A stretch of 64,000 bases of DNA from Vitrella brassicaformis CCMP3155 (GCA_001179505.1 CDMY01000439.1:12272-76271), one strand, 5' to 3'; numbered from the stretch's first letter, positions 2,896 to 32,857 are shown. The notes: a model not told the origin generated them from the sequence alone. Numbers and translations: made by a program.

Positions 2896-3700
2896 TGTCC
2901 TGCACACACAGTCACACCAGACAATGGAACCACTCCGTGAATGATGATATGCTGTGTCAGTGTGTCAACGGATTGACTGCCTCTCTGTGTGTGTGGCCGT
3001 TACGTTGCTTGAATGCGGGCCAGTCACTGGAGAGCGGTGCGCCCGATGGGATGCCGCAGTGAAGGAAGAGGTTTTGTCCAGTCCACTCGACAGATACGAC
3101 CGGCAGACACACGTGTGCTGCAGAAACAGACAGATCTCACTCTTCCTTTACGTAGCGTTGAGGCGGTTGGATCTCTCACAGATCAGGCAGGCAGGCAGGC
3201 GAGCATCCCAGGGGTTCGCTGGTTGGCGTTGTCTTCTTTCTTTCTTTCTGTCTACTGAAGTACGTCATAGCCTCAAGGCCTTCTCACTCTTCCTCCTTTC
3301 CTTTTGGTTTGCGAGCTCCTTCGACACACGGCAGCAGGGGCAAAGATGGAAGAAGAACTGGGGCTCAGGAGCGGAGACGCACGGCTTTGGTTTCTCCAGT
3401 AGGATACAACGAGGGTTTCGAGAGCCGTGGTGTCGCGGAAGCTCGCAGAAATCGACCAGCCCATCTCGACGCAGATGTGACCACACGTCACTCATGGCCT
3501 CCATCGAGGCTTGGGATGAGCTCAGAGGGCCATCAAAATCGCCGGAAAGGGCTCATTTGCCAATTGGATCGAGTGAGGATCGAAGTGCGGGTTTTCTCAA
3601 ACCTGGCATGAGTCGCTCCGCACTGAGGCCACACGCACATAAAGGCAAAGAACGAAGCGAAACAAACGCCCAGAAGCTTCATGTCGGAAAATGCGAGCTT
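2896..3700 (+). repeat. Dispersed non-coding module (CCAATTGG core plus leader-exon/intron arm), copy 1; candidate bidirectional promoter cassette
   Basis: Block 3400-3700 matches the reverse complement of 26620-26981 and 32230-32590. Block 2896-3340 matches the reverse complement of 27790-28232. Lies between divergent genes (copy B on -, QRT3-like on +). Confidence 0.85.
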
Positions 3701-3873
3701 GAGTATGATCACAGGCTGAGAGGCGTTCCAAGACGGCTTACAGAGCTTGAGAAGGATTGTGCAGTTGCTGAGGAGAGTCCTCGTTGCGTCGTCGTGCGCT
3801 ATCGGTGAACGGTCATCGGAGGCGTTAACGCCATCGACCATGGACGTCACGGCGCCTTATCCCGCAGGCCATC

Positions 3874-5958
3874 ATGCTGGTCCCCTTCTCCGGCCGATGC
3901 GTCCCTCGGCTCCTCCCCTGCTCGTCCCATCTCTGCCTCGTGGCAGTCTTCACCCTCGGCGCTATCGCTCAAGCGGCGCCCCCGAGCAGCTTCCTGTCGT
4001 ATGTGAAGGACAACAACCTCACGATGACCGACTTTGCACCGCCCCCGTACGCCTCGCACCTTTCAGGTGCACCAGACCAGCGCAGACGCAACCACCTGGA
4101 CGACTTTCTTTCTCCCTTGCCGCAAGCACCCGCCATACTGACTCCTGATAATGACACGCCGAGCTATTATGTACGGCGCCATTCCTGGGGTTTGTTGACC
4201 TCTCCCTTGATCAGCCCGAGTCGAGATGAATGCGCTGGAAGTCGTGGTGATCTCATTTCGGTTGCTGCCTTTGGTGGTGACCCCACTGGCGTTGCGGACT
4301 CGACAGCCGCGTTTGCCATGGCCATGGGCGCGGCACTGAAGCGCTGGGACGGCAGCTACTTGGCCGAGTGAGTGAGCCATTGAGCGACTGCATCCAAAAT
4401 TACTTCATCTCTCGGTGATGGAATTGGCGCCTGTCTGCGTGTGCAGGGGCATCAAGAACTTGGGCGGTGCGGTGATCTCCCTCGGCGGCGGCCGGTATTC
4501 GGTGTCTGCGCCCGTGGTGATCCCCCGGGGCTATGGTAACCTCCACATGCGTGACGGCACCATCAAGGCCAGCGACACCTTCCCACACGACTGCTATGTG
4601 GTGGCTGCTGGGAGCGACGGGTGCACGGGGGATGACGAGGACCTCGTCAACTTCAACGAGCACCTGTCCTTCTCTAACCTCATGCTGGACGGCAGCAACG
4701 TTGCCTATGGGGTGCTGTGGCTCCACCACACCATCGGGGCGGTGGTTGGGACGAACCTGTTCTTAGGGTTTCAGCAGAGGGGCGTCTATATCCGGCTCGG
4801 ACACGAGGTGACAACAGCCGAGCACCCATCGATCCCTCACAAACAGACATCGTTTGTGTGCTGTTGTGGCGGTCAGGTGGTGGTCGAGTCGACGTGGATG
4901 GGTCAGTATCTGTTCTCGGACGAGCGCAAGCAGACGAGCCAGACGGCGACGGCCATCTACATTTCGGCCAACGACCATGTGGTGTCCAACGTAGTCATAT
5001 TTTCGGCCCTCGTCGGAGTAGTCGACAAGTGCGTTCTTCGGATCATCCGTCACTCCGGATCACTATCATGTGTCTGATGTCATTTGTTTAGGGGTGCGGG
5101 CAACACCTTTGTGGGTCTGCACAGCTGGAATGGGTCGGGGACATCTTTCATCTCAACGGGATACAACACGCGCATTCTCGGATGGTACATATGCACACAG
5201 GGAGCGACCCAAACGGTGTGGCATGCATGGTGTGTGTGGTGTATGTGGCTATGGCTGGCAGCTACCCTGACTTCAACGACGTCATATTGGAGAACCCCTA
5301 CCACGTCACCGTAAGCAAGAATGGATGGACGGCAGTGCATTCACGGTGCTCACTCCTGCCACATGTGGGTGCGTGACCACTTAGGTGACAAACAGTTTCT
5401 TCCTCGGCGGTGCGCAGATTGTGCTGAGGGCCAACAGAGACGAGAAAACCGCCCGGCGGCCGCCTGTCATTCGGGTGGGTCCTGCTGCCTCTGCCGCACC
5501 TCCAACACACAGCGAATCTAGCTTCATGTGTGTGTGAGAGTGTGTTTGTCGATGGATTGGTGCATATTCAGGGGTTGATCATCCGCACCAACACCTTCGA
5601 CTTCAGCGACGAGAGCATCATTCAGCTGCATGGCGAGTTCGACAGTGTGTCGGACACCTTCATCGGCGGCAACATCGTCAGCAACAACATGACGGCCGTC
5701 AGCACATCGTCCACCAGACAGCTGCACCTCACAAACGCCACCGAATGGGAATTCGACCTGTCCGATGAGCTGCTGTTCGCGACCATCCAGAGGGTGCAGT
5801 ATTCTCTGGAGCTTGACGACGGCCAGCCGCTGGTGCGGCATGCGTCGCGGCCGGCCCGGGGCAATCGGGTGGTGGTCGAGACGGATGTGCCAGTGAGCGG
5901 CACTGTGACCATCGCCGTCGACCAGAGCAGGCTGACAAAGGGCGGCCTCTCGGCCTGA
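3874..5958 (+). CDS. QRT3-like polygalacturonase / pectin-lyase-fold (right-handed beta-helix) protein with N-terminal hydrophobic segment; multi-exon
   Basis: ISVAAFGGDPTGVADSTAAF (Pectate_lyase_3-type start), GIKNLGGAVISLGGGRYSVSAPVVIP, GTIKASDTFP and C-terminal WEFDLSDELLF..I..VQYS...VVVETD.PV...V...VDQS resemble plant QRT3 as recalled; GT-AG introns link the ORF pieces. Start could be at 3840 via a short intron. Confidence 0.75.
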
Positions 5959-6265
5959 GGGACGACTGTGGGAAACGCATCAGTGTGTCTGTGTCTGTGG
6001 GCTTACACTCGACTCAGCTTAGCTCGTGTGTCTTTGTGGACAGTGTGTGTGTGTGTGTGTGTGTGTGCTGGTTGGTGTTTCGTCTCGTGAGGTAGAAGAT
6101 CGAGACGGTGTCAAGTAGGCTGGTGCACACAAACATAGATTTGTACGCCAGCCACATGTCTGTATATGTTGAATTCATTTGTCTGTCAATTGCACACATC
6201 GTTCGTACGATCCCTATCAAGTATGTTCCCTCGTCTCACACGCACACACCCGTTGCCGCCTTCAC

Positions 6266-14135: not shown

Positions 14136-15139
14136 GACGCGCTGACGATATCAACCAGATGGGCCCCAGAGGAGGTTTGTTTGAGAAACGAGGAGACTGG
14201 GGGCGAAGGGGGGCTGATGATGCAATTAAGTTTGCAAGTGCGATCACAAAACCACGGCCCGGGCACCTCTTCCGAAACGCTTACGGAGCAATGACAAGGC
14301 GCCGTGTCGGCGAGATTTCTCGACGCGCGAGAGACAAGACATTTTATTTTCTGAATTCACCCATCAGATTTTCCAGCACCGCCGCGCTTTTCCTCCTCCT
14401 CGGCCTTCTCGCGGCCACATCTCCTCCTTTTCATTTCCTTTCGGGCTGCTTGTCATCCTGTGTGGCTCGCCCAAGCCCCTCCCAGGCCCTCCCGCTTGTC
14501 CGGATGCCAGCCGCCACTTCTTGTTTCGCCTCCTGTAGACGGGCAGCCCTCCGCCATTGGCGCCCTGCCGCCTGCCGCGCCCTAGGCGTGGCGTCTGCGT
14601 GGCGGCTGCGGGAGAGTACCCGTGCCTTCTTTCTTTCTCGTGGAAGCCTCCGTCAGGTCAGTGATGTGGTGTGAGCCTGAACTGTGTGTTTGTGCATGGT
14701 GCGAGCGAGGCCCTTGTGCGTGTGCACGCGCCCGTGGCCATTCCTCACGTGTGCGCTCATGCACGGCGCTGATACGTCTGTGTGCAGGTGAGTTTTTGAA
14801 AAAACGCCGTCTCATTTTTCGACACGCTTTGCGACAGGGGAGAAGTGTATCGCCAAGCCGTGTCTTCATTGTGGGTATAGAGGCCGATTCTTCCTGTGCC
14901 GCCTCGGAGATTTATTTTTTCAGCGCCCGCTCGGCCCTTCTGCCCTTCAAACTATCGATGCAGTGCCGAGTAAACATTCAAAGTCAGAGTACTCGTCGCT
15001 TCGTCTTGTTCAGGATTGTGTGCAGAAGGAGAGCTGGTGTCTGAGATGTTCGACGCAGGTCTTTTTTCCTTTTTGTTCCCCTTTTTCTCTCTCTTTTCTT
15101 CTCTTTTCTTTTTTGCTGGGCTTCTTTGACATTCCTCGT

Positions 15140-17570
15140 TCCTCAGCCACGGGGTGGGGTCTCTTGTCCTTCTTTCGGCGTGGAGACCGGCTGTCGGCTC
15201 ACACCCGTGAGTGCAGGAACAGGTAGGTAGCCACCCTCAGCACACTGGGAGTGTCGGCGGAGTTTTCCTGTCTCGTTCAGAGGTGTGTGCGGGGGGCTCA
15301 TCTGTCTGTGAGATGTCCTCAGAGAGGAGGGACGAGGGAGACGGCAGGGCTGCCTCGTTGTCAGACAGCAACACAGGTGGGAAAACAACAGCTTATTCTC
15401 ATCATTCGCGTGTGCCAGCTTTCTCTCTGTGTCGATGTCTTCAGGGGCTGAAGAGCAGTCTGCGGAAGCTCTTGAGACACAGCCGATGGAGCTCGTCCTC
15501 GTGCCAGGTACGATGCGATTGCTTCCTCGGTGCCTGTCATTTCTCCATGTGGTCGCCTTTCTCTCAGATGGCCAGCCAGCCATGGCCATGGATCATCAAG
15601 AGGCGAGCCGCCAGCTGCCCTGGGCCGGCCTTGCGGACGGCTGGAGCCCAGAGACGTACAAGGCGACGATGAAGGGTAACAGCAGTACCTCATCAAAAGA
15701 ACGAACAAGCGTATTGTCTCTTCTCTTCTCTGTTTGTAATGGATTCGTCAGCCTATGAGCAGTTCTGGCACAACCCCACCTGTGACCCCACATGGCCATC
15801 CGACTGCACCGATCCCGTCTCATGCTTCCTTCAGGCAGAGCTCAGCATCATCATGTAGGCAAAGAAACAAACCAAACAACCGAATTTTCTCTCCGACTGT
15901 CCCTTTTCGCACGCTCCTCAGCGCATTCAATTACTTTGACAAGGCACGCATGACTCGTGCGAAAGACCTGCTGGGCATGTCACTGCAGCTGGCCGAACAG
16001 GTAATGCCAACCTGGTAGACACAGGGGCTGCACCATTTCAGCTCGAAAGAAGAAGGCGCTGCGGGCCAGCGAGGCAAGGTAATGAGCACGTTGAGCGGAC
16101 ACAAAATCATTTGAGATACGTTCTTTCATGTGTATGAAGTGTCTCTGAGGATGACGGGGCTTGGTGGATCATGCAAAGGAACATGGACGATAGCCTCGAC
16201 TTCCTTGATGGTGAGTGGCGGAATAGATGGGAGAAATGGGGAGAGAGTGCCTGCGTCCCTTAGGCATGATGACAGCCCTCTCCCTCTACCTGTCGCCAGG
16301 ACCTGAGGCGAAAAATCTAAAGCTCCTCCGAAAGGTGGACGAGGTGTTTGGTTTATAGTAGCAATTTCCTGTCTTATCCTCTTTCCCTGTCAGGAGTTGC
16401 GGCGGCCTCAAGGCGGGTACGCTATCATTCGACTGGGGCTGTGATCGCCGAGTACGTCTCGAAGGTGAAGGCCAAGAAGAAGCTCAGTCTTGAGGAGCTG
16501 GATCAGCTGGTCTGCAGAAAGACAAAGAGCTTCAAGCGCATCCGTTGCTGTTATTTTTCTAGATAAAGACGCTCCCATCACGGCTCCAGACATACATGGG
16601 ATTCTATATCGCGTAAGCGCCACGTATAGGCGGATCCTTCTAATCTGTATAGGCGTGAAGCGGAAGACTTCAGAGGAGCTGTCAACATCTTCAAAGGAAG
16701 CCGCCTAAACGAGTAAGAAAAGAAAGCCAAAAGTGGCCTTCTGACGGTGATTGTTGTTTGAGTCCCTCCCCTTGTTAAGGAGGGGAAATTTGAGCGAATG
16801 GCTCTACAGGAAGGAAAGAGCAACTTACTTCTTGGAGCCCTTCATCATATAGCACTCTTACAACGATGTCTATGCAATGCTGAGAGGTGAGTCCAGGTTT
16901 TGTCGCCTTTGTGTCCAGCGAAGGCCTTTTGGTATTTGCAGGCTGATCATAGATGGTGCTGAAGAAGACATGAGCGACCGCCGGCGGGTAGTGTTTTGTG
17001 TGGTCTGCTTCCTCAGCGGCCACCCAGAAGAAGGCATTGAGATACGCAAGACATTCCTACACGTCAGCAGAAGTCAAAGCTATGTATCATGTAAACCTCT
17101 GTCTGCATTTCAGCGCTGCAAGGTACCAAAGGGCTCACTATGACAACAAGACGTCTTGAGAATGCTGGGTGAAAAGCCTACGTAAGACAGGCAGGGTCCC
17201 ATTCACGCCCACAGGCGCCATGTGCAGAGCTGATGTCGCTTGTCCTCTGTGCAGACCACAAGACGCTCTCCTGGCATGGGTACATGTGTTGTACCACTGC
17301 AAGCTGCTCCCAAAAGCCACAGGACACCTGCCCTTCATATGCACATTTCTCGATGGGGTAGAGGGAAACAAGAGAGCATCTCACTTGATGCTTGCAGGCC
17401 AAATTTGCGGCTGGTCTCCTTTGATGTCTCGGTCAGATGCAGAAAAAACTGTGTGCGGCATGGCAGAAGTCCGAGAATTATGGGCGTGTGCGGCCCTTCT
17501 CCTCAGTAAGCCATCAGTGCTTGAAATGCTGTCATGCATCGTCTCTCTGTCTCGTCAGCGCTGGCGATGG
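15140..17570 (+). CDS. Orphan multi-exon gene or decaying gene (exons such as LPWAGLADGWSPETYKATMK, AYEQFWHNPTCDPTWPSDCTDP, FNYFDKARMTRAKDLLGMSLQLAEQ, LIIDGAEEDMSDRRRVVFCVVCF)
   Basis: Series of short exons with canonical cag|...|gtaag/gtgag boundaries. Some junctions do not keep phase, so it may be a pseudogene; no family recognised. Confidence 0.4.
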
Positions 17571-18250
17571 GTGAGCCAGAGGAACAAGCAAAATGGGGAC
17601 ACAGCAAGTGCCAGGCATACCTGCTGCTCACCATATTAAGTCATCATGCGGAGAGCAATGTAAGCAATTTATCTTTATTCTTTCGTGCTCTATTCTTCTG
17701 TCGTTGTCTTGTCATGCTTCGTGCTTAGTGCGATTAGGTCGTGCCGTTGGCTTTCAAGGGACTTCTCATTCTACCGCAGACCGACGAAAAAGCGCACCGA
17801 ATCCTCGACAGCTCGAAAAAGTAATAATGCACGAGCGGTGTGCAGGATTTCAATCTTGCAACCTTGATGTATGCAGGGGAGTGGGGACGATTGTTTCAAA
17901 CGACATCACAAATGAGCTTCGAGGGACATGACCTGGGACGGCCTTTCGGATGGCTGGAGCCCAGAGACAAACAAGGCGACGAGAAAGGGTGAGCCATCGC
18001 CAATCAAAAGAATGAAAGAGCGTATTGTGTCCTGCCTCCTTTCTTTGTAATGCACTTGTCAGCCTGTGAGAAGTTCTGGCGCGACCCCACCTGTCACCCC
18101 ACATGGCCATCTGAGTGCTGCGACCCGGTGTCATGCTTCCCCTACGCAGAGCTCAGTATTACCATGTAGGCAAAGACAAATGAGACACTCGAATCTCTCT
18201 CGACTGTCCCATTGTGTGTCCTTTTCAGCGCATTCAACGACTTTCGGGTA
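15590..18250 (+). repeat. Direct repeat pair: about 15590-15930 and about 17915-18250 (four small exons plus introns)
   Basis: gacggctggagcccagagacgtacaaggcgacg vs gatggctggagcccagagacaaacaaggcgacg; ccccacctgtgaccccacatggccatc vs ccccacctgtcaccccacatggccatc. Confidence 0.85.
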
Positions 18251-18356
18251 TCAAGTTTGGTGACGAAATTGGCGGCGACTGCTCCTCATCAAGGCCGCCC
18301 GCCAGGAACTGCGCCCTTCACGTCCCAGTAGAGGGAGAGGGGAGGGGGGGGGGGGG

Positions 18357-18656
18357 NNNNNNNNNNNNNNNNNNNNNNNNNNNNNNNNNNNNNNNNNNNN
18401 NNNNNNNNNNNNNNNNNNNNNNNNNNNNNNNNNNNNNNNNNNNNNNNNNNNNNNNNNNNNNNNNNNNNNNNNNNNNNNNNNNNNNNNNNNNNNNNNNNNN
18501 NNNNNNNNNNNNNNNNNNNNNNNNNNNNNNNNNNNNNNNNNNNNNNNNNNNNNNNNNNNNNNNNNNNNNNNNNNNNNNNNNNNNNNNNNNNNNNNNNNNN
18601 NNNNNNNNNNNNNNNNNNNNNNNNNNNNNNNNNNNNNNNNNNNNNNNNNNNNNNNN
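18357..18656. other. Assembly gap (300 N) flanked by G runs
   Basis: Run of N in the sequence. Confidence 1.
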
Positions 18657-18764
18657 GGGGGGGGTGATGGGTGGTGGAGAGGTGAGTGACGGAGAGAAAG
18701 GGATGGAACAGAAGGGACCTTCCTGTGCACACATGTGGTCTGCTTTCTCTTTGTGTGTCTGCAG

Positions 18765-21700
18765 GCGATGCTGGAGACGACAGGTGAAATCGCTGTCTAC
18801 ATTTTACATCTGCGGGCTTATTCTTCTCCCTTTTCGACGGACGAAGTGCGCAACCTCTGCCGACAGCGAATGAGAGACGACTGCGATGCTGTGATGCCTC
18901 TTCGGGCTGAGGTTCGCAGGTAGGTGCGGCTTGTCTAGAGAAATAATGGAAGGTGTGGCACATGTCATTCTCGTTTGCATGTGCCATCTGCAGATTCTGC
19001 TGACATTGGGTCGCATCAGGAAATCGCCATCTCTCGTCGCCTCGTCGCCGTTGTCCTCTCGTTCCGCACCGCACCGCATATTCCATCTGATCAGATACGG
19101 CACGCCATGGGCAACTTCTCGTCCGCTTCGGAGTCGGACATCAGACTCAAGCGGGAGCCTGAGGTCGTTGAGATTTCTTATATGACCATCGTGCTGCGCT
19201 CCCATGACTTCATGACGCGCGACCTCGCATTCAAAAAGATCGTGGCGGTGGGAGGGAAGGGAGAGCAGCAGATCAGACATGGAACAGCATCATCCGCATG
19301 ATGCTGTCTGTCCGTCTGTCTGTTTGTCTGTGTGTGGGTGAGCAGGAGTGCGACCCCGCGAGGGGCGTGTTGGCAGGGGTCGGGCCGGCGTTCCCCTCCC
19401 CTAACGACCCGCAGGTGCTCATGGTGGGCGTGACGCCCGTGGGCGACAAGTACGTCAAAAAGATAAAACACATCGTGGATAACCTCCATCTGGTCGGCCA
19501 GCCCTTCCGGGCACCGCTGGAGGCCGAGATGTTCCACCACGTGCGTAGGCCACCACACAGACACACACAGACTCATTCTAAACAGATTGGCTGGTTGGTT
19601 GGCCTTGCTGTCTTTCAGGAGTTACGGTCCATCAGTTTGTCGAGGTTCTCTCCGGTAAGAAGAGACGGACCACGAGAAGGGGAGGCAGCGACAAGTGTTA
19701 TGTTGTCTGTCGTCTGTGATTGTTCTGCAGATGCAGATGACGGTGCCCTTCGCGGTGAGAAGACGTCTGGCACGGCTCAACTCATTGATGGCCACACGTA
19801 GACGGCCGGCATGCACCGCCTTTCTTTCATAGATACCAGCGGTGACCTGCGTGGGGCCGACGGTTTCGACGCCGCCTGCGTGGAGCAATGTTCCGCCTGA
19901 GTTGCTTGAGTGGAGCGGACACCGACGGCCGCCTTTATACAAGCTGTACCTGGTTGTGGTGAGGTGTGAGGAGGACCACAATCGCATGCAGGCTTACCAG
20001 GCCATCACTGCCGTAAGCAGAAGGAGAGAAGAGATGTCGGGATGGGTACACGGCATGATGTGCAATGCATGTGTCTGCTGCTGGCTGTAGGCACACAGGC
20101 CGGCGAGCGGGTTCCAAGGCACCGTGTTTCCGCCCGAGATCGTCGTTACCCCACCAAGTGGCTCATCAACATCAAGGCGCCCAAGGGGCGGGAAGCCGCC
20201 ACTCTGATTCAGAACGTTGTCGACAACATGCACCAAGAGATGCGGATCACGAACAAGGCGAGCATCAAACTATACTGACAGGTGAGCAATTCCATTCACT
20301 GAGACAGACGGAGCAGACGCACAGGTCGCCTTCTCTGTCCTTGTGCCCCTCAGAAGTTCACAAAGATGTCGAACATGGAGCTCTTACCGACGGTAAGCCA
20401 CAGAGACCACAACCGTCGTTGAGCCGCCTTGTGCTGTTGTGGCCCCTGGCCATGTGTGTGCTTCTTGGCCCATTCCAGGGAGACGGCCAAGAAGATCGCA
20501 CGAGAACAGACGCCACCATGACGGCGTTTCAGCGAGTTTTCGCGCCCATCGCCATCGACAGCAGGCAATTTCCTTTGCTCGGGGACGGGGAAGCAGCAAC
20601 AGCAGTCATGGCGGCGGAGGAGGAGCAGCGCAGGCGGCAGTGTTTGTTGTGGATGAAGCCGGAGGATGTAGAGGTGGCGATGGAGGCGTAAGAAGCGCAC
20701 TGCAGGGGAGGTGAGCGGGCAGCTACGCAATGGCCAGACAGACAGACAGACAGGCAGACAGACAGACAGACAGACAGGGAGACGGCTGCCAGGGTGCTGG
20801 AAAAGGGCCGGGCCCGGCGGAGTGGGTCGCTGCATGGCATCTGCTCTGCGTGTCCTGTCGTCTTTTGCAGAGGCTTGAGGCGGCCAAAGCCCTCGAGACG
20901 GCCAAGGTGAGTCATCGGCCAACGCCAATCAGTGGAGAGCGCTACGGCCAAGATCGATTTCTGTCCTTGTCTGCAGGCGGCCCTGTACCACCAGACGGGG
21001 CTCCAGGTGCCCACGGGCGAGACCCACACCTTCGGTGGACAGGGCAGTCTGTGGCGATGCGGGCGGTACATGGTCAAGATCCTGGACACGAAGTGCTCCA
21101 GAGGCGGGGTATGCAACGAAACCACACACGAATGGGACAAGCACACAATAGGCAGTCACTTATCGTGTCTGCTTGTCTTTGTAGCCGCCCACCGTACACG
21201 CACTGCTATCAGATCTTGCCGGAACAGCGACTGCTGCGGGCTGACGTGGAAGTGCAAGAAGCGTGAGCTGTGCTGCGGGAGGAGCGTGTGGTGGGTGGCA
21301 TGTGAGAAGCGGGCAGGGTGATGGAGCGGGCACAGAGGGGGAGTGTCACCGACCACCGACAGCCGTGTCTCGTGTCTCCGTGTCTCATTTCCCTCTCCGT
21401 GCGTCCGTCAGGCATCGCTGGCTACATTTTATATCTCGTGGTCTCTTTGTCACGTCGCAAAACGTCTTTTCCTATACAGACGGAGAGGACAACGCCTACA
21501 GGTAAGCATGAAAGCAGAGAAGGACGACAGACGGAGATGCATGTGCCGCACACCTCACGGTTGCGTATGTGCGTGCATCTTATGATGCTCAGCGGCCCTC
21601 GTCAGTGAGGGCTTGAAAAGGTTGGAAGATCGAGCTCACATTTGGCAGGCATCACCTACTCACCCACTCATCCGGCCGGCCGACGGTCTCTTTCTCGCCG

Positions 21701-21830
21701 CTTCCATCGCATCCTGGACATCGCCCTCGGCCAGTCTCTTCGGAGGTAGAGTGGTGACTTTAGCAGAATGCCGTCGTGCGTCTTTTCAGCCCCTATTACC
21801 ACCACGTAAGGCCGCACACATACCGAGACG
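18765..21830 (+). CDS. Orphan multi-exon gene with an internally repeated alpha/beta domain, followed by kinase-N-lobe-like exons
   Basis: Exons YMTIVLRSHDFMTRDLAFKKIV / PQVLMVGVTPVGDKYVKKIKHIVDNLH and YLVVVRCEEDHNRMQAYQAIT / PTKWLINIKAPKGREAATLIQNVVDNMH share a pattern. Later exons read TFGGQGSLWRCGRYMVKIL and RILDIALG. Confidence 0.4.
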
Positions 21831-23340
21831 CTGAGACACACGTGTCCCTTGTGAAGTAATACTGGTTGCTGATTCTTTCATTTTGTATCTCGTGGACGCT
21901 GTACCCATATTGTTGCCCCGATGGTCAAGGGAGGCGGGAGGCAGCCACGTTGGATTGGCTTGGGTACCGAGTTTGAGGAATGGTGGAGGGGAGCGATGCA
22001 TACAGGAGGGGTAAGAAGCTGGGTGACGCCGTCTGTATGCATCGCTCTCCATTCAGAACATCGCCGTTTTGCCTGTAGCCTTCAAAAAGACATGGTAAGA
22101 AGACACGATAGGTGTCGATATGTGACCTGTCTCTTCTCTTGTCTGTCGCTCATATGTGTATCATGCAAATGCAGGTGACCGTGCCCTATTGAGATTCGTC
22201 CACATAGATACGACTGCAGACGGATGGGCAACACGCAAACAACGCCCGAGGTGGTTCCCTTCATACTGACCCCACTCAAAAATGCTGTTCCAGAAATGGA
22301 GTGGCTGCCGGTCTGTCTGTCTGTCTGTCTGTGCAGCGGGATGATGCTGACTTGTACAGGTCGCCACGATAGCCTTCTATATCCTGTAAGCAGTACTCGA
22401 CAAGGGCAAAGCCTCGATCGTATCAATCGACACCTCGTCCTTTGTTGCCTGCCTGCCTCCCTGTCCTGCCTGTGTGTGTGCAGGGATGGGTCGTAGCTCC
22501 TTCATGCGTGTTCCACACAGCCCTCCCCCTCCCTCTCTGCCTGCTCGGTGCATGGTGATGCTTTCTTTCCTTTTTGAGTGACTGACTGTAGCTTAGTAGC
22601 CGGGCGAAACTGGGCAAACACAGGCAGACAGAGGGAGATACAGACAGAGGGAGATACAGATAGTGAGCGTGGGTGATTCCTGTTGCGTGTCGTCGTTTGA
22701 TTGTGCGTGAAAGACATGGGACTTGGCCGTCAGGCCGCTTAGGACATTCCGTGAAACCGCGCTCTCTCGCCGGAATCGCAGGAGTAGCAATGTTCCGCCT
22801 GAGTTGCCTGAGTGATGCCGACGATCTTTTTCCATACAAGCTGTACGTAGTCGTGGTGAGGTCTGAGGAGCTCCACAACCGCATCCAGGCCTGCCAGGCC
22901 ATCACTACCGTGAGTGGAAGGAGAGGAGAGATGCCGGGATTGGTACACGGCATGATGTGGCTGCTGGCTGTAGGCTATCAGTCCGGCCAACGGGTTCCTT
23001 GTCCAGGTCTTGCCACCAGAGAGCGCCGTGGATGACCCCACCAAGTTGCTCATCTACATCAAGGCGGCCAAGGGGCGGGAGCACGCCACGATGATTCAGA
23101 CAGCTGTGGAGACTATCCACCAGGACATGCGGATCACAAACAAGGCCAACATCACACTCTACGCACAGGTGAGCGATTCCATTCACTGAGGCTGACGGAG
23201 CAGACGCACAGGTCGGCTTTCTCTGTCCTTGTGCCCCTCAGAAGTTCACAAAGATGTCGAACATGGAGTACTTACCGACGGTAAGCGACGAGAGACCACA
23301 ACCGTCGTTGAGCCGCCTGCCTATGTTTCTTCCTGGCCAT
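19860..23340 (+). repeat. Direct repeat pair: about 19860-20460 and about 22780-23340
   Basis: KLYLVVVRCEEDHNRMQAYQAIT vs KLYVVVVRSEELHNRIQACQAIT, and DMRITNKA; introns near-identical (gacggagcagacgcacaggtc...cctcagaagttcacaaagatgtcgaacatggag). The second copy has an in-frame TGA (RERRG*). Confidence 0.9.
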
Positions 23341-23550
23341 GTGTGTGCAGGTTGAGTACTCACAGGTAACAAGAGCACCAACAGAACTCACATTACATCC
23401 TCACCGTGTTCAGTGCTGTTTCCCCCCTAATCTGCGCGCGTCAGCCGGCGATAGCTGAGGGGACTCAGGTACAGAGGGAAGTCCAAGACGCCAAAACACT
23501 TGTGCAACGGCGTGTCTGTGTCTTCGTTCTGTGTCTGTGTGTGGTCATAG

Positions 23551-24560
23551 ACATCGCCGCCTCAGGTGCTGCCGTTTGCGAGTCCCATCAACATGGTGGG
23601 CGCTGGCACAAGTGCAGGGAGGCCACTGAATACCTCTTTGCCACTCTCTTTCTGGGCAGGCTCCCCACCGCCGCGGGCTGCCACCGTCCGGTCTACAGCC
23701 CGTGAGAATGCAACACGCTCACACGCAACACAATGCACTTGGTGATATATTTCTATGGATGGGTGGCTGCCTGGTGGCACCTTTCAGGAGTGTGGGTCGC
23801 TGGTGGGCCCAAAACGAACGTGTGCCTGTGGATGTCACTCTCTCGCCATGTTGTGTGTGGTGTATGCAGCCGTATGGGGGCGGGCCGTACCCGACCGTGA
23901 TGCCGCCAATGGTAGGGCAGTGGTGGCAAGGGTCCCACATCAATCGCATCACATGATGGCATCGTGCGTGCGTGTTGGCTGTCTGTCGTGTTTGGTGCAG
24001 CGCCACGGAGCGATGGTCCGGCCTCCTGTGAGCGACGCCATTGAGCCGACACTCACATGAACGTCTCTCTGTCGTTTGTGGTGCGTGTCAGCAGATGGTG
24101 CATACGCCGAGCAGCCAGAACCTACCGGCCAACATGTACCCACAGTGTAAGCAGACCAACTCGTTATGAGATGGGTGTGGTGGGTGACACGCACATGGGG
24201 TCGCTGGACGTGTGCATCTGTCCGTGTGTGTGTAGACGGTCACGGCGTGCCGCAGTGGGGGCACAGTGGCTAAACTCAACACAAAACAGCCCAACGAAAC
24301 ACCAAGAAGCGGGCAAACGAGAGGTGTGGGGTGTGGATGCATCGACGGGTGTGGTGTGTGGTACATGTGGCCTCGTGTGCAGATTGTTGCCGAGTTGTAC
24401 AGGTTGAAGATAGCATGATGGTCAAGTAAGTGGCAGAGGAGCGAAAACACACGCGGCCGACTCCACATCGATCAATCAATAAGTGTCTTCTCTTCTGTGC
24501 CTGCGCCTGTCTGTCTGTGTGCAGGTATTGGCCCGCCGCCAGCCCTCGGCGTGCTAGTGC
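23551..24560 (+). CDS. Short Pro/Ser/Gly-rich exons (TSPPQVLPFASPINMVG..., PYGGGPYPTVMPPM, RHGAMVRPP); possible low-complexity tail of the 22.8 kb unit
   Basis: Canonical splice sites around short open exons; no homology recognised. Confidence 0.3.
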
Positions 24561-24846
24561 GTGTGCATACGATATGTATTGACGGGGCGGGGTGTATCAT
24601 CGATGTTGTGTTGGTGGGCGGATGATGACATGGATGGATGAGCGGTAGGTTCACAGACAGACAGACAGATGGGAGAAGGGGGTCGTGCGCTGCCTGCCTG
24701 AGCCTGCCTGCCTGCCTGCCGTTCGGTCACTATGGTGTGTGACTGACTAAAGTGGAATCCGATGTGGTGCCCGGCCGAATGTGTGGTGTCTGGATGGATG
24801 GGTGGATGGACTCAGTGACAGATAGATACAGACAGATACAGACAGA

Positions 24847-24957
24847 CCGCCCCTTTCGATGATTGCTGTGCGTCTATCCTCTCTTATCTACAGCCTGCTG
24901 CTGCTGCTGGCTGTAGATAAGAGAGGATAGACGCACAGCAATCATCGAAAGGGGCGG
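24847..24957. repeat. Perfect inverted repeat: 49-bp stem, 13-nt (TGC)n loop
   Basis: 24847-24895 is the exact reverse complement of 24909-24957. Confidence 0.97.
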
Positions 24958-26399
24958 GCAGATTGATTCGTCGGCTCATAGGAAGCGCGCCAGCGTGGCA
25001 TCATAAGCCGACGGACAATCCCTTCCATGATCGACGGACAGACAGACTGACTGACAGACAGAAATACGCATAGCTCTATGTTTCTGCCTGCCCACCTTTG
25101 CCTGATACCTGGGTGGGTGCCTTTGTGCATAGTCTGGTTGGCTGCTGTGGTGATGATGTGCGTGTGGGTTTTCGGCTCGGCTGTCTGTCTGTAGTATTTC
25201 CGTGATTAGCGATGGATTGACTGACGGCTGAATGATGGACAAGCTCGATGCTCACTATTGCACTGCAAAGAAGTGTCTGATCCATTCAATGAATAAATGA
25301 AGGCGGGGCAAAATCACCCAGACACAGACGCGTTAAACACCACCTCTCCGTCCAGCTGCCTCCCCCGCTCCCAATTTCACTCATTCACTCATCCACTCAT
25401 TCACTCGACCATCTTTCGCTTCCCTCCTTCCTCACTGCTCCGCCTCTATCATCGGTATGCCGAACCACTGCTGGAAAATAGCAGCTGCAGCGGCCGACGC
25501 ATACCTCTCATGGTCATCTACATATCTGCACAGAGGGATGCGCAATGAGTCCGAACATCTGGACGTCCAATACACAATCGCACAATTGCACTCACACGCA
25601 CACAAGCACATCTACACACACGACGCAAACACAGAATCACACAACAATGGACCCACCCGACACCTCCACCCCCCACCCACCCAGATGCACATCTGGGTGC
25701 ATATCATCCATCCACGCACCCACACCTACACTGATGGGTGGATGGATGGATGCCTGTGCGCGTCCTCGAGGCAAGCCGCGAGCGGCCAGCATGTATACAT
25801 CACATATATCCACACACCAATACCCAAGCGCATCAGCAATTACACATAGAGACCGGCAGCTGTCACGCCACTCCTTTGGGACCCAACGAAGGTGCAGGGA
25901 AACCCTTTCAAGACGCCCTGACGTGACGCTTATCGAATGGTCTTCCTGAAGGGCTTCCAACGCACCCACGGTGCCTGTGAGAGTCAACCCAAATGGAACG
26001 CAGCATACAATACCTACACTGCACCAGCACCAGCCGCCCAGACGGCCTCATGCACATGGTGCGCATCGATTCATCCCTCGGTAGACGACTCGTGGTGCAT
26101 GCGAAACGCTGCGAAGAATCACACAACGGCGCTTTCTTCCTGCCTCCCTTGATCAAAGTGTGTGATGGGCCAACCGTCTCACTCACCGCTGCGCATGGAC
26201 GAGGAAGGTAACAGGGCGCGGCATGGCGCTCAAGGCCTGCACGCAGAGAACAGAGCAGAAGCATAAATTCTGAGAGGCGGTCAACACAGCGTAAGAGTGA
26301 CTCAGTCCATCAGCGATGTAGCGCCACCCTCTCACCGTGCGATGCGCTTGCAGCACAGCCGCCGGCTGCTCGTCACCAGCCACGCCACAGGAGCTGAGA

Positions 26400-28232
26400 G
26401 GTGGACAGGCATCTGCCGTTTCACTATCTTTCACCTGACAGATCAGGCAGAAAGCCATCCCGATGATTCATTTCCATTCGCTTGACGTTGTCTTCCTTCC
26501 TTTTCCCTTTCTTTGTTCCCTTCGTTGCCTACTGACGCACACCACAGCCTCAAGGCCTTCTCACTCTTCCTCCTTCCTTTTTGCTGCTGATTCCTGAATA
26601 AGCGAACAACCCGAATCTATCTCGAGGCCGTTCTTCCAGCCCTTTCTCCTCTCCTTTCTCCTTTGCGAGCTTGTGGTTCGAGCTCGCATTTCCTGAAATG
26701 AAGCTTCTGGGCGTTTGTTCCGCTTCTTTCTTTGACTGCCGGTGCGTGTGGCCTCAGTGGGGAGCGGCTCATGCAAAAAAATCGCAAAACGAATTTGCCA
26801 GGTTCGAGAAAACCCGCAATTCGATCCTCACTCGATCCAATTGGCAAATGAGCCCTTTCCGGCGATTTCGGTGGCCCTCTGAGCTCATCAGGAGCCTGAA
26901 CGAAGGCCGTGAGTGACGCGGGGCACGAGTTTGGAGAAACAAGTCATGCGAGCTTCTGCGACACCGCGGCTCTCGAAACCCAAGAGGATTCGAACAAGAC
27001 GGCAACCAAGTGGATGACGTCTTTTCCCCTACGCCCTCCTACCACATTGTTCGATCAGCGTTTGCCCTGGCGAATCAACTCAACCTGGAGATACATCAGA
27101 TGGACATCAACACAGCATTTCTTAACGCCCCGCTGGACAAGCCTGTCTTTATGCGGTGCCCACCTGGATATGAGAAGCCCGGCCATGTTGTTCGTCTACG
27201 GAAGGCATCGTGGATGTGTTGTGATATGCTGTAACTGTTCCATCTGTGCACACACCACACCATTCGTGCTCATGCTTATGCTGATCTGTGCACTTGTCCA
27301 CTGTGTGTGTGCGTTCGCTACCCAATGGTCATCTTCTGGATGCCTTTGTGCTTTCTTCGTGATTTTCTTTTCTTGAGCACATGCCGTGATGGTTCGTCTT
27401 GAGAGGGGGTGTCAGGATTGCCAGCTTGGCAAGACGAACCAGTGCGAGCTTGTGAGCTAGGGTAGATTGCTGTGTAACGGAGAGAGAGAGGTGAAGACAA
27501 GGAAAGACAAGGGAAGCGTTCTGAGGAGACACGATCTTATCAGCCATCACCGAAGTGAGACCTGTGTTGACCACCCTTCATGATGCCATACATGGACAGA
27601 AACAACTTTGACTGACTGGCCAGTCCATTGGTCTTATTAAAGTAAAAGGCACTCTTACTCTGGGACTTACCGCCCAGCAGATCCTCTATTCAGCTAACTA
27701 CAGGAAAGGTCCTCACCGGCCTTTTTCTCACATTGTATCCTAGTGTAGAAAATTAGAGCCGTGTGTCTCCGCTCCGCGAGTCTATCAAATTCCCCCCTGC
27801 TGCCGTGTGTCGAGGGCGCTCGCAAACCAAAAGGGAAGGAGGAAGAGTGAGAAGGCCTTCAGGCTATGACGTACGTCGGTAGACAACGAAAGAAAGAAAG
27901 AAAGAAAGAAGAAATAAGACAACGCCAACCAGCGAACCATCGGGATGCCTGCCTGCCTGCCTGATCTGTCAGAGTAGAAACGACAGAGAGAATGTCTGTC
28001 TGTTTCTGCAGCCCACGTGTGTCTGCCGGTAGTGTCTGTCGAGTGGACTGGACAAACCTCTTCCCTCACTGCGGCATCCCATCGGGCGCACCGCTCTCCA
28101 GTGACCGGCCCGCATTCAACCAACGTAACGGCGACACACACAGAGAGGCAGTCAATCCGTTGACACACTGACACATCATATCATCATTCACGGAGTGGTT
28201 CCTTTGTCTAGTGTGACTGTGTGTGCAGGTCA
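26400..28232 (-). repeat. Dispersed module copy 2, with arms on both sides in inverted orientation and interrupted by a copia remnant
   Basis: Core 26620-26981 plus 27733-27790. The arm motif aaggccttctcactcttcctcc is on + at about 26550 and on - at about 27840-27860; CCAATTGG at 26837-26844. Confidence 0.85.
26982..27732 (+). mobile_element. Ty1/copia LTR retrotransposon remnant: RT fragment, polypurine tract and 3' LTR (27410-27732)
   Basis: RGFEQDGNQVDDVFSPTPSYHIVRSAFALANQLNLEIHQMDINTAFLNAPLDKPVFMRCPPGYEKPGHVVRLRKA is RVT_2-type. PPT gagaggggg (27401-27409) directly precedes TGTCAGG; the LTR ends ...CTCACA where the host module resumes. Confidence 0.9.
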
Positions 28233-29633
28233 TCGCTGCTCGAGCTTGGCCTTGGCGCCCAGACGAGTGATGAGAATGCGGTCGTCCCGCTGGAGGGGTG
28301 CGTGGCGCCGACGGAGCCGCTCGACCCCTCCCTGGGGCAGGAGTCACGCTCGAGCATCGCCATCAGGACCCCCACCCTCGCCCACTTCCCCTCTTCACTG
28401 CTGGGCGTGCGGCACCACATTCTCGCAGCTGCTCGCCACAGCCAGACCCATTTGCCCCTTCGTTTCAGTGTGGGTGTGCTGCCGCTGGGACGTGTCTGTT
28501 TGGCAAGAGGAGCTGCAAGGAGACGGCGGAGGCCTCTCCCGCCATGCAGGCGCTTGTCGCGCGTCGGATGGTCGAAGGTGAGTGGGTCGGTGGGGTGGGG
28601 CGGATCTGTGGCTCCCCATCACTGCATGAATCTCTGTGTCTGTGCGGCATGGCCAGAGTGGGATACGGCCAAGAGCACTCTCTGATGGTGTCCGAAGCCG
28701 CCGAGCAGCTGCACCGTCGCGGGCAGGGCGACCTGCAGTCCTTCGCCAACAAATACCTCAACAAGGACAACCAACAAACGGTATGTCAGGCAGCCAGATG
28801 ATACGTGCACGACTGTTGATGTCGATGCGGATGTGTTTGGTGGCTGTGATGCCCGCCTCCAGTAGGTCGGCATTGGGTGCTGTTCCTCTGGCTCGAATGA
28901 GGGAACGTGCACAAGAATTCGCACAAGGTGAGACCCAGATTCCCTTCTATCGTGCACACATATCCCAATCTCCCCTTCTCGCCCACCCATTCAGAGCTAT
29001 CGAGTCTCTGGCATTGACCAAGGACCTCCTGGAGTGCTTGAAGAGAGACTTGTTCTCCTGGGTCGATTCCCTGCAGTGCGACCTGTGCGGAGGCAAGACG
29101 TCAGCTGACCCCTGTGAGGAGGATTTGGGGCGGGCTGCACAAGTGCCAGGCACTGACATGCGGCCACACTACGCGATCCCCAAGGTGACGTCACGGCAAC
29201 ACACAACACATGGCAGGAATGATGGATGGATGTGTGTGCGCGTGTGTGTGTGTGTGTAGATGATGTGTGGGTCTCGCGAACAACGACGACTGGTGTGGGT
29301 ACAGCCGTGACGGTGTGGACTGCGTGTGCAAGGAGCACGACCGATGTCTGTCTGTACCAACATGGATACCACAAGTGCGGCTGGTGAGTTGGGGGAGGGG
29401 GGGAGAAGGCAAGCAGCACGGCACCTGAGCATTCCCCCTTTGTGATGTCTGTCTGTCTGTTCCATGATTCAGCGACTGGCACTTCATCAGGAATCTCGCT
29501 GGCGCGTCGTGTTCCAAGCCAGAGTGCCACTTACAAGGCCGCTGCACTTGCTGTCTTCCAAAGAAAGCCCTGTGAATGCCGCTGGGAAGCACTGCGTCCA
29601 TATCCGTTTCGTCGCTGGAAACCCAACCGCTGA
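28233..29633 (+). pseudogene. Chimeric relic: N-terminal peptide:N-glycanase (PNGase/NGLY1) exons followed by secretory-PLA2-like exons with frameshifts
   Basis: SALGAVPLARMRERAQE and LLECLKRDLFSWVDSLQCDLCGGKTSADPCEEDL resemble the PNGase first CxxC region; the catalytic region is absent. Next exon: WCG...DGVDCVCKEHDRC, then a TCTG duplication, YQHGYHKCG|CDWHFIRNL and YKAAALAVFQRKPC. Confidence 0.6.
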
Positions 29634-30279
29634 CCACCTCTCCTCAACTCCGCTTGTAGGTGATCAGGCAGGCAGCCATTCTCGGCCCCAGCCGAATCCT
29701 TCACCTCTTTTGTCTGTCGCTATGGGCAGGTGGCTGTCCAACGGGCAGGAGATGGCTGGTCAGCTCAGATCGCCGTCTGCCCGTGCCGATGAGAAGATCT
29801 GAGTTTTCTCTGTGTTGTCACGACTTGTGTTTGTTGTGCCTGCCTTGTGCATGCATGAGTACTTGCGTGAGTTGATGGACTTAGGCAGGCAGACAAGTGG
29901 CGGCAACTAAGCTGGAATGCTCTCATGTGAGTAGAAATTGAAGGCATTGTGTCTGCCTGTGGGTTGGTTGCTGTTTTTTGGAGTCAAGAGTTCGCCTGTC
30001 CGTGTGTGTGAGTGTGTTTGTGTGTTGGTTCGCTCCTGAGACACCACGATCACATCCATTCATTCACTCATCCATTCAGCCAGCCAGCCAGCCAGCCATC
30101 TGTCCATCCAAGACCTCACACAGATCGATCACAGAGGCGCACCGACACGTACACCAAAAAAGGGGTTCAAGGCAGAACCAAGCATTGGCAAACAACCGAA
30201 ACGCAGGCATAAAGCTGCATCCTTCGCGCTGCAACGTATCTAACAGCCGTAGATCCGTACGCACAGCCACTTCGGTCCT

Positions 30280-30370
30280 GCGGCTGGCGGTGAAATCGAA
30301 TCCACCGATCGTTTGGGTGGCTCCCTCCCGCCCTGTCCGATTGACCGGGGGGAAATGAACCGCCAGCCAC
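30280..30370 (-). other. Conserved 3'-flank stem-loop, copy 1 (second copy 61936-62022)
   Basis: On the minus strand, gtggctggcgg pairs with ccgccagccgc (11 bp, one G-U). The enclosed sequence is nearly identical in both paralog flanks. Confidence 0.45.
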
Positions 30371-30454
30371 TTCACTTGTCAATCCAATCCCACCGGCCAG
30401 CAGGCAACACCACAACTCCCCCATACACATAAGTGCCCAACAGCGTGCAATCCA

Positions 30455-31999
30455 TCATACTACCGATGGCTCTCGCTGACAATTATCACACACACAGACA
30501 GCACGAGATCTTCTGCTGGCCTCACTGTCGTTTACGGCTCGCTCCTCTTTGCTCACCTTGTGAGTACTGCTCGGTGCGGCCGCCGCGACCTTTCGCTGCA
30601 CATGGGTGCGCCATGCAACCGTCCCGAAGCGGGATAGAACCGTCATAATAGTGAACAGGGCAGACACAACGAAGAGAAACGGATTTCTGGCCTCCGTCGC
30701 CCACATGATCGTCAGCACCAGGACCGGCACTTCCAGCAGGGCAAGGAAAGCAATCCAGAGGTGTTAGCAGAGTGAGGGAGAGCCGCGGATCGAGTAGTGA
30801 AGAAACAGCGACACCACGTCAGCCAACGATAAGCCCAGGATGATCAAGCCGACAGTTTGGTGGCCTTGCGCTTCTTCTTCCAGACGGCTCCTTGTTGTAT
30901 CGAAGCACTCCTCATCAGCATCATCCCACGGCGAACCGATGGGGGGGACCCCACAGATGGATCTTGCACGACGCCATGCAGTGTCCACCATCGACCACCT
31001 GATGAATTCCAGCCCCACTGCAGCATCGGTAATGAAGTCCATGGCCATTCCCACAACGGCCACCAGTTTATAGAAGCGAACGAAGGTGAGAATGTCCATC
31101 CGTTTGAGCCGCCGCTTGACCACCGAGTGGTACAGGATGGGCTCTATTTGCCGAGCCTTGGCTATTCGCTCGGCCGTCGGTGAGGGTCTCCACTCCGCCC
31201 GACGGCCGCAGCATGAGAGCCGGTTGTGATCGACGTCGAGTTTCCTCTCACCCGTCGGGCTGGTCGATGCACGGACAATGCGTGGCTCCGACAAAACGAT
31301 AAAGAGGGCCAACTGAAGAGAGACCGCACCAGCCACCCACGCCAGTGTGCCGAAGCGGCCGGGGCCAAAGGGATCAGGTTTCAATGACACATAAACCGCG
31401 GTCGAGAAGATGCTCCCGGACAGGACGATGGCCAGAACGAAAAAGAAGTAGATGATGCATAGAATGCCCCACCAAAGAGGCGGCGTGCACAGACTTCCCA
31501 GTCCAACGAGGACCATCAGAGAGGGCGGCCCCAAACCCACAATCACAAAGGGAACGAACAACAAACTTCCCTCGTGCTTACGGATGACAAAAAGCAAGTA
31601 GCTTATGCCGCCCCACCACCAGACTGCATAGATCAGGACGAGGCCGATGATGAGAAGGAAATGCCTCATAGGGTAGTCCGTCAGCCACAACATCACACAG
31701 TGAGTCTGCAGCACCAGAAAGCCCCACGCATCACCCTCCTCAAGCGAAGCATCCCCGTCGCCAAGCGGAGCCCGGCCGTCAACTGCAGGGGTGGAGACCG
31801 GTGTCGAGGTGGTGGTGGACACGCCTGAGAGCCGAGCGCCGCCCTCGCCATCTCCTTGAGCCTCCGGTTGATGCTTCGATGACTTCGCTGACCTTGTCGT
31901 CGTGACGTCCACTTCAGAAGCTGATTGTCTGAGGACGTCTGTGTCTGGGGGATCAGCCGTGGCGGGAGGAGCGACGGTGACGAACGTGGGCGGCTCCAT
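30455..31999 (-). pseudogene. Intronless multi-pass membrane protein paralog 1 with premature TAA at 30764-30766
   Basis: ORF 30764..31999 aligns with 62151..63656. TGC TAA CAC here vs TGC CAG CAC in the paralog, and homology (LEVP.LVLTI.WATEA.NP) continues in frame to 30455. Confidence 0.8.
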
Positions 32000-32229
32000 G
32001 CGTGCGTCTAGTCGAAAGGACGATTGGGAGCCGTGCGAATAGACGCGATGCTTGAAGGCCGCTGTTGTAGATCTGCTGTCGAGGAAGTGAGCTCGGCAGC
32101 CAAATCACGGCGGCTTCGCAAGGAGGCAGATGCCTGCGTCCACTCGGAGAGCCGATTGGGAGACGAGATCCGTGCGAATAAACGCGATTCCTGACGCAAA
32201 GGCCGCTGCTGCTGATCTCAAACGCACTT

Positions 32230-32857
32230 CGAAGCCCTTTCTCCTCTCCTCCGGTCTCCTTCCTCCTTTGCGCTTGTGGCTCGAGCTCGCATTTCCTCGA
32301 ATGAAGCTTCTGGGCGTTTGTTTCGCTTTTTTCTTTGACTGCCTGTGCGTGTGGCCTCAGTGGGGAGCGGCTCATGCAAAAAAATCGCAAAACGAATTTG
32401 CCAGGTTGGAGAAAACCGGCAATTCGATCCTCACTCGATCCAATTGGCAAATGAGCCCTTTCCGGCGATTTCGGTGGCCCTCTGAGCTCATCCCAAGCCT
32501 CGATGAAGGACGTGAGTGACGCGGGGGAGGAGTTTGGAGAAAAACAAGTCATGCGAGCTTCTGCGACACCACGGCTCCGGAAACCCTCGTTGTATTTCAC
32601 TGTAGAAACCCAGAGCCGAGTGTCCCCTCTCCGCCACCCTATCAAATTGGGGCCTGATGCCGTGTGTCGAAGGTGCTCCAAACCAAAAGGGAAGGAGGAA
32701 GAGTGACAAGGCCTTGGCTAACGTACGTCAGTAGATGTTTTTGGATCCTATCGTGGTCAAGGTGTGTGACCGCAGTGGCGGCGCAGAAGTCACCAGGATG
32801 ATCCAGGTCCCGCCAACGTGGCAGGTAGGTGAGATACACTGACTGATCTGCCTGTAG
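32230..32857 (-). repeat. Dispersed module copy 3, between the membrane-protein gene (-) and a + strand gene fragment
   Basis: CCAATTGG at 32440-32447. Arm gggaaggaggaagagtgacaaggcctt at about 32690 is followed by gtacgtc...ctgatctgcctgtag, an intron-like segment ending just before ATG 32858. Confidence 0.85.

Follow-up and report, generated by a model that had tools for sequence, protein, structure and literature searches.

A non-coding module recurs three times in the stretch of DNA analysed here (the window), 64,000 nucleotides (nt) of the chromerid alga Vitrella brassicaformis CCMP3155 that correspond to contig C439:12272-76271 (CDMY01000439.1) in an assembly of 72.7 Mb and 1064 contigs (GCA_001179505.1). 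The three copies, A (2890-3703, minus strand), B (26636-28238) and C (32234-32735), are members of a genome-wide family of conserved intergenic units. On balance, and with moderate confidence, we regard these units as a shared two-way promoter that has spread by duplication and been reshuffled by ectopic recombination or gene conversion. This reading draws on the established homology among the copies, the size of the family, the anatomy of the unit, its placement at the 5′ ends of genes, the mosaicism of the copies, and the absence of transposon hallmarks. The original prediction, made by a model from the sequence of the window, had described a reused module between unrelated divergent genes and interpreted it as a mobile cassette for gene birth; the observation is confirmed, and the interpretation is partly supported.

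In the mechanism that we favour, the unit would span the gap between two genes pointing away from each other, with its core acting as a docking platform for sequence-specific factors and a short word near either end, here called the box, marking each of two start regions. In the subfamily found in the window, the unit would be joined to a segment that we call the arm: the 5′ untranslated region (5′UTR) exon of a PNGase-like gene, together with that gene's first intron. Copies would arise by ordinary segmental duplication, travelling with their genes, and would then be reshuffled by ectopic recombination or gene conversion. Copy B would be a duplicate of a locus on contig C318 that decayed and was later struck by a copia-type element; copy A would represent the capture of a promoter and 5′UTR by a gene that already existed, the breakpoint lying ten bases inside exon 2; and copy C would have kept the unit and exon 1 while acquiring a different intron and gene. 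The promoter activity, start sites, arm splicing, and factor binding that this mechanism entails are predicted from sequence.

The three copies and their parts

Self-BLAST of the window and a repeat search recover A, B, and C as homologues (E 1e-66 to 1e-158), with A inverted relative to the other two. Positions 2890-3409 of A align with 28238-27733 of B at 83% identity (E 1e-158; 96% over the final 185 nt), and 3413-3702 of A align with 26981-26678 of B at 76%. Between B and C, 26650-26981 match 32255-32586 at 92.5%, and 27733-27883 match 32590-32735 at 82%. The intervals of B that match A and C are 26650-26981 and 27733-28238; the intervening 751 bp match neither copy. The range first proposed for B, 26400-28232, includes this unrelated insertion (26982-27732).

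The module has two layers: the unit, of about 270-300 bp with a near-invariant 72-nt core, and the arm, a candidate 5′UTR exon plus intron that is found at five loci only. The features by which the module was first recognized are all present. The CCAAT palindrome CCAATTGG, a purine-rich leader, and a GT donor are common to the three copies (donors at 3263-3262 on the minus strand in A, 27871-27872 in B, and 32723-32724 in C); the arms of both A and B end in the acceptor tgtgtgcag followed by G[AT]CATCGCTG; and C passes from an AG at 32856-32857 directly into the ATG at 32858. In sequence form, the arm is what had been proposed, a 5′UTR exon with an intron.

The unit of copy A runs from box to box at 3440-3699 (minus), with TGCGAGCT at 3440-3447 on the minus strand and at 3692-3699 on the plus strand. 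Its core survives as a remnant (3564-3608, minus; profile score 39.6 bits over model positions 31-75), the first core block having been lost to a 24-nt deletion. A candidate 5′UTR exon 1 carrying the purine-rich leader (3264-3439, minus) and a candidate intron 1 ending in tgtgtgcag (2900-3263, minus) follow. The ten post-acceptor bases shared with B and the C318 copy occupy 2890-2899 (minus), and the ATG of the downstream gene lies at 2835-2833.

Copy B has a unit at 26664-26954 (plus) with boxes at 26664-26671, 26681-26688 (inverted), and 26947-26954, and an intact 72-nt core at 26768-26840 (plus; 81 bits, E 2.6e-24). Its arm (27733-28238, plus) comprises the leader, the donor given above, an acceptor AG at 28227-28228, and the shared ten bases at 28229-28238. 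The unit of copy C (32284-32559, plus) is bounded by an inverted box at 32284-32291 and a right box at 32552-32559, and its 72-nt core lies at 32371-32443 (plus; 81.7 bits, E 1.5e-24). The arm attributed to C holds up in its first part, which is shared up to 32735 (the limit of the plus-strand span that self-BLAST finds homologous to A and B), but the remainder is C's own; its candidate intron, as judged from the splice-site motifs, spans 32723-32857 (plus).

The genome-wide family and its core

A BLAST search of the genome with copy A returned five further partial copies, on contigs C592, C318, C845, C27, and C544, all of which include the stretch around A 3490-3608. Aligning them revealed one block that is far better conserved than its surroundings. 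This 72-nt block sits just upstream of CCAATTGG, which had been placed within the core of the module; that palindrome follows the block only in the subfamily formed by A, B, C, and the C592 and C318 copies, whereas unrelated bases stand there in other subfamilies, and the family-wide conservation belongs to the 72-nt block instead.

Two motifs within the core have 58 and 36 genomic occurrences, versus 0-2 for reversed controls, and keep a fixed spacing of 41 nt. Across the 72.7 Mb genome, a sequence-only profile of the core (R1) gives at least 75 matches, of which some 65 are full cores; the count is a lower bound, 150 candidates having been scored. Among 77 columns in an alignment of 32 copies, 17 are invariant and 24 nearly so, whereas the flanks differ. 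Along the core come, in order, an A-rich block ending in AATTTGCCA, GAGAAAA, and two TCGATCC half-sites 11 nt apart; downstream lies a TGACG-type motif. The family is rare, with about 65 core loci against 22,817 genes. A GTGAGT at about +78 (unit positions are counted from the first base of TCGATCCTCACTCGATC) was considered as a conserved splice donor and rejected: copies A and C318 read AT there, and the conserved portion is the TGACG motif.

An alternative explanation of the core is that it constitutes a small RNA gene or a polymerase III/TFIIIC-type site, acting as a short-transcript promoter or an insulator and not as the promoter of the neighbouring protein-coding genes. Extra-TFIIIC sites in yeast are located between divergent genes, and the core contains strings resembling a B-box (GGTTCGAG, TTCGATCC), several copies have a run of T before the right box, and the copy on contig C338 is directly followed by a glycine transfer RNA (tRNA) gene. 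The B-box match is imperfect, however, and the stretch after the core varies in both sequence and length. Rfam, searched over the whole window at E values up to 1, gives nothing in the modules, ARAGORN finds no tRNA-like head anywhere in the window, and RNAalifold predicts for 32 cores only a fold of -1.5 kcal/mol with four invariant pairs and no covariation. A tRNA gene stands near just one of 36 copies, and on that count the tRNA link was dropped. The core pattern has no match in the JGI metagenome contig collection, a weak negative in a collection that includes Vitrella-like complementary DNA (cDNA) contigs. We consider this explanation highly improbable. The C338 gene itself, tRNA-Gly(GCC) at L028:1288-1359, starts about 30 nt past the word GCTCGC, which resembles the box and ends the unit on the right.

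A protein-coding role for the unit was likewise considered. An ATG-led frame is open in B and C, but the coding reading was dropped because the frame is interrupted by stops in A and C845; it is absent in other subfamilies, and the variable positions of the unit fall in contiguous blocks.

Boundaries of the unit

The unit is bounded on both sides by the 8-mer TGCGAGCT/AGCTCGCA, at about -145 and +125. Of 36 copies, 23 have the left box, (T)GCGAGCTCAA (GCGAGC), at about -145, often doubled into a palindrome, and 18 have the right box, TTTTGCGAGCT (GCGAGC), at about +125. Only 14 of the 36 have both, spaced 268-298 nt apart. The left box is followed by a weakly conserved T-rich and GT-rich stretch, and the 72-nt core terminates at +17; the next 105 or so bases vary in sequence and length and carry GCCTC and the TGACG motif.

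Occurrences of the 8-mer or its complement number 49 in the 300 nt around cores, versus 2 in 76 kb outside, with peaks at -200 to -100 and at +100 to +150. In the window, it occurs 12 times where 3.0 are expected; nine of these occurrences are in A, B, and C and two are in a long terminal repeat (LTR)-type repeat. Homology between subfamilies ends at about -150 and +125. On contig C27, two units face one another, with cores 270 nt apart at 95661 (plus) and 95932 (minus), and have a single central palindromic box (GCGAGCTCC..GGAGCTCGC) in common.

Placement between divergent genes

Flanking sequence was obtained for about 45 of the 75 profile matches. Segments conserved at the protein level point away from the unit on both sides, with the C600 copy as the sole exception. 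When flanks were scored by codon usage, with a score trained on conserved flank segments and two window open reading frames (ORFs), 41 sides pointed away from the unit, 5 toward it, and 26 were unclear; at loci outside the training set, 23 pointed away and 3 toward. The unit accordingly occupies the position of a bidirectional promoter, between two genes pointing away from each other, and its reuse before unrelated genes, as originally described, is borne out: the flanks that point away form at least nine clusters unrelated to one another. The flank genes that could be identified include ankyrin-repeat, TLDc, and PNGase-like genes, and no transposon domain was found among them. Some families lie left of the core at certain loci and right of it at others; at C570, the orientation of the unit relative to its gene is the reverse of that at C279 and C738, and the breaks lie near the unit ends. 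Two flank genes, at L048:1687-2919 and L062:84-821, open with an F-box-like N-terminal motif.

On either side of copies A and C, coding sequence points outward; B stands between relics, with little coding signal to its left or right. This agrees with the placement between head-to-head genes or relics first described. On the far side of A, the first ORF of the diverging gene lies at 3874-4371 (plus; codon-usage away score 46.5). The gene diverging from C on the left (30764-31999, minus; ATG at 31999-31997) belongs to an orphan family with paralogues in Vitrella. A search with Pfam of 25 window ORFs around A, B, and C returned a single match, an RVT_2 fragment, and the large exon of A's gene, used as a protein query, retrieved paralogous MMETSP proteins and nothing else.

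Three cDNA-like JGI contigs (L079-L081, samples 3300017148 and 3300017297), one of which starts with a SMART-type adaptor remnant, encode only paralogues of the gene at 30764-31999, at 74-88% nucleotide identity. They show that the JGI set contains Vitrella-like transcript assemblies, and the absence of the core from that set weakly fits a core that is not transcribed. A search of the metagenome contigs with the leader pattern was set aside, its single match being to an unrelated contig of 38% GC content.

Duplication, probable capture, and mosaicism

The origin of the arm is suggested by contig C318. There, the arm leads into a gene with exon matches to Rad4/transglutaminase-like and PAW domains; exons were searched singly, not as joined spliced models, and each match is below threshold per exon, while jointly they fit PNGase. 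This PNGase-like gene (L013:4158-5505, minus) appears intact and is preceded by the same unit and arm; it is likely the source of the PNGase relic reported in the window, which is confirmed at 28239-29272 (plus). Copy B and the C318 locus share 77% identity from the arm through 29237; the catalytic exons are missing from B, which keeps only the 5′ third of the gene, and similarity resumes at 30302-30389 with the neighbouring gene. Because this synteny covers the arm, the 5′ part of the PNGase gene, and the neighbour, we interpret B as a decayed segmental duplicate of unit, arm, PNGase gene, and neighbour, into which, to judge from the sequence, a copia-type element was inserted later.

Copy A departs from this arrangement. 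The arm had been said to diverge into unrelated genes after the shared ten bases; this holds for A, whose homology to B and C318 stops at 2890-2899, but it describes one junction only, since B and C318 share the sequence beyond the ten bases and the gene downstream. Paralogues of A's gene lie at 323-1077 and C439:8968-9318; their alignment with it starts some 60 nt before the ATG, and the sequence farther upstream is different. As A alone departs, and its paralogues lack the module, a single event is indicated, in which an existing gene captured promoter, 5′UTR exon, and intron. Copy A is thus best read as one chimeric junction, at which unit and arm have been set before a gene whose paralogues are without them. 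The proposal of gene birth does not survive this comparison: the genes served belong to existing families, and that of A has paralogues without the module.

Copy C retains the unit and exon 1 together with its own intron and a different gene. An exon of that gene (33722-33837) recurs as an inverted relic to the left of B (26271-26382, minus), beside an inverted piece of leader and arm start (26435-26583, minus; 76% identical to 27828-27972).

Identities among the copies change from segment to segment. In the left part of the unit, B and C are 95% identical and A and B 87%; in the right part, A and C592 reach 87% and A and B 77%; in the distal intron, A and B reach 95% and B and C318 84%. The closest partners are therefore B and C in the unit, A and C592 in its right part, and A and B in the distal intron, a mosaic that points to recombination or gene conversion among copies. 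Most subfamilies, moreover, share one flank for more than 1 kb. Neighbour-gene order and mosaic identity together are what segmental duplication with later recombination would leave behind. The copying of the module that had been proposed is explained by segmental duplication with mosaic recombination or gene conversion, and no dedicated mobility mechanism is evident.

Several points weigh against a shared promoter spread in this way. Flank orientations are not independent, many loci being paralogous. The invariance of the core is partly an effect of collecting copies through core motifs, and within young subfamilies the core is conserved no better than its surroundings; such uniform decay is compatible with copied elements decaying neutrally no less than with local constraint. 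A general promoter role for the word TGCGAGCT is a tentative lead, with which the two enrichment counts are consistent. Finally, the young pair C482/C878_22128 shows 94% identity confined to the unit, the flanks being unrelated; this looks like copying at the level of the cassette and is unexplained by plain segmental duplication.

That pair is one reason to consider the unit as a self-propagating promoter cassette that moves or flips between promoters by recombination or gene conversion anchored on the TGCGAGCT boxes, which the majority of Vitrella promoters would carry, with cores exchanged in the absence of a transposase. The often palindromic boxes, the end of inter-subfamily homology at the boxes, the inversion at C570 with its breakpoints near them, and the mosaic identity among A, B, C, C318, and C592 all accord with such a cassette. 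Against it, no event has been seen with both its donor and recipient states, eight bases offer very little homology for recombination, and the subfamily with the cleanest unit-only copies is without the left box. We judge it quite improbable. A wider proposal, that the box-to-box unit is a transposase-free self-spreading cassette, copied, flipped, and swapped through box-anchored recombination, and that through it fast-evolving species-specific families (F-box-like, TLDc, ankyrin, and others) come under a common regulatory programme whose reader would be an expanded DNA-binding family such as ApiAP2, is speculative and, in our estimation, unlikely.

Transposition as an alternative

The window supplies its own reference for a mobile element. 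The 751-bp insertion in B (26982-27732, plus) contains a copia-type RVT_2 match (26983-27231, E 1.8e-15) and an LTR-type repeat (about 27200-27725) that has at least 40 genome copies at 93-98% identity, many of them located at contig ends. Copies of this repeat stand on both sides of an integrase (rve) match on contig C515. The window's final 80 bases (63921-64000) start into this repeat, and contig C439 terminates inside it, at window position 64000. On this evidence, we take the insertion to be a true transposon.

The unit itself could be a non-autonomous transposable element of an unrecognized or decayed class that inserts at promoters, perhaps at TGCGAGCT duplicated as an 8-bp target site, so that the genes merely adjoin it. 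The roughly 65 dispersed copies with subfamilies, the sharp boundaries at unit level, the same 8-mer at both ends in direct orientation, the C482/C878_22128 pair, and the uniform decay within subfamilies would all suit such an element, and 12.97 Mb of unclassified repeats have been reported in Vitrella (Woo et al. 2015, PMC4501334, supplementary file 2). The same source lists 0 bp of short interspersed elements (SINEs) and of hAT elements, which speaks against this reading (Woo et al. 2015, PMC4501334).

The hallmarks of transposition are nevertheless absent, in agreement with the original report of no transposase or terminal target-site duplications (TSDs). No terminal inverted repeats (TIRs) were found at the box-anchored ends of 36 copies or in the cleanest unit-only subfamily. 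Variable TSDs are lacking: the only repeat at the ends is the constant TGCGAGCT, present at both in just 14 of the 36, with no duplication immediately outside. There is no A-rich or simple-repeat 3′ tail, the right end of the unit is not the CA of an LTR, and by eye the ends do not fit those of a Helitron (5′-TC...CTRR-3′ with a hairpin), for which a Rep/helicase partner was not searched. Of 146 reverse transcriptase (RT) or integrase matches (64 rve and 82 RVT_1), not one comes closer than 100 kb to any of the 75 unit matches. An LTR reading, prompted by same-strand pairs 3-9 kb apart, was abandoned on this absence and on the host genes that lie between B and C.

The manner of conservation also differs. 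Real transposons in this genome are 93-98% identical over their full length, whereas the unit consists of discrete motifs at fixed spacing with variable stretches between them, and most subfamilies share a flanking gene, which indicates copying along with genes. The unit hence does not belong with TIR elements or miniature inverted-repeat transposable elements (MITEs), SINEs, LTRs or solo LTRs, Helitrons, structured non-coding RNAs, or protein-coding exons. We regard a transposable element as a somewhat unlikely explanation and retain the duplicated and reshuffled two-way promoter as the preferred one.

Comparison with other promoter systems

Nothing published about promoters in Vitrella, or about this repeat, was found; other systems offer points of comparison. 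Eukaryotic bidirectional promoters likewise lie in a short gap between genes pointing away from each other, with words at both ends, and can be used in either orientation. Ordinary promoters of this kind share short motifs, however, whereas the Vitrella unit is homologous over about 280 bp, with a 72-nt core that is near letter-perfect at about 65 loci before unrelated genes. The ups regions of Plasmodium var genes are long conserved 5′ flanks common to the members of a fast-evolving gene family and are reshuffled by ectopic recombination. These regions, in an alveolate relative, serve one gene family, whereas the Vitrella unit serves at least nine unrelated families.

Promoters derived from transposons (solo LTRs, MITEs, and SINEs) resemble the unit in being dispersed repeats, a few hundred bases long, that form subfamilies and lie close to gene starts. 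The unit differs from them in having no TIRs, TSDs, tail, LTR pairing, or linked RT or integrase, and in being conserved motif by motif, unlike the true LTR in the window. The nearest precedent for reuse is prokaryotic: promoter reuse and 'putative mobile promoters' have been described in bacteria, many cases being tied to insertion sequences (PMC3575422). As there, highly similar promoter sequences stand before unrelated genes and are separate from the gene downstream; unlike those promoters, the Vitrella unit is nuclear and eukaryotic, with a 5′UTR exon and intron attached in one subfamily.

The find is of interest because it joins a long, testable promoter element with a clear promoter capture in a little-studied relative of the apicomplexans. 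Chromerid algae are free-living relatives of the malaria and Toxoplasma parasites, and how genes are switched on in them is hardly known. The 72-nt core offers a testable regulatory element that is long enough to fish for binding proteins, and the loci carrying the unit form a natural set of genes that are probably co-regulated. Copy A would be a concrete case of promoter and 5′UTR capture in a eukaryote without a recognizable transposon, and the unit could serve as a defined promoter for expressing transgenes in Vitrella. Should the unit prove to spread on its own, promoter reuse as described in bacteria would extend to the eukaryotic nucleus.

Other features of the window

An assembly gap (a run of N at 18357-18656) separates A and B, at distances of 14.6 kb and 8 kb, respectively, and overlaps none of the copies. 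It is embedded in a poly-G tract that shows at both edges (18297-18356 and 18657-18664), so that it is more probably a sequencing drop-out than a missing repeat; nothing resembling the module was found in its flanks on either side. Because of the gap, the distance from A to B is an estimate; nothing else is affected.

At 24847-24957 lies a near-perfect hairpin with 55-nt arms that are 96% complementary and a loop of 1 nt; its microRNA-type matches in Rfam are all below threshold (the highest reaches 45 bits, where the gathering score is 84). Local gene duplications at 76-84% identity pair 323-1077 with 2111-2859, 15616-15937 with 17929-18244, 19884-20461 with 22786-23348, and 30275-32041 with 61931-63707, and the region as a whole abounds in tandem and dispersed paralogues of orphan families.

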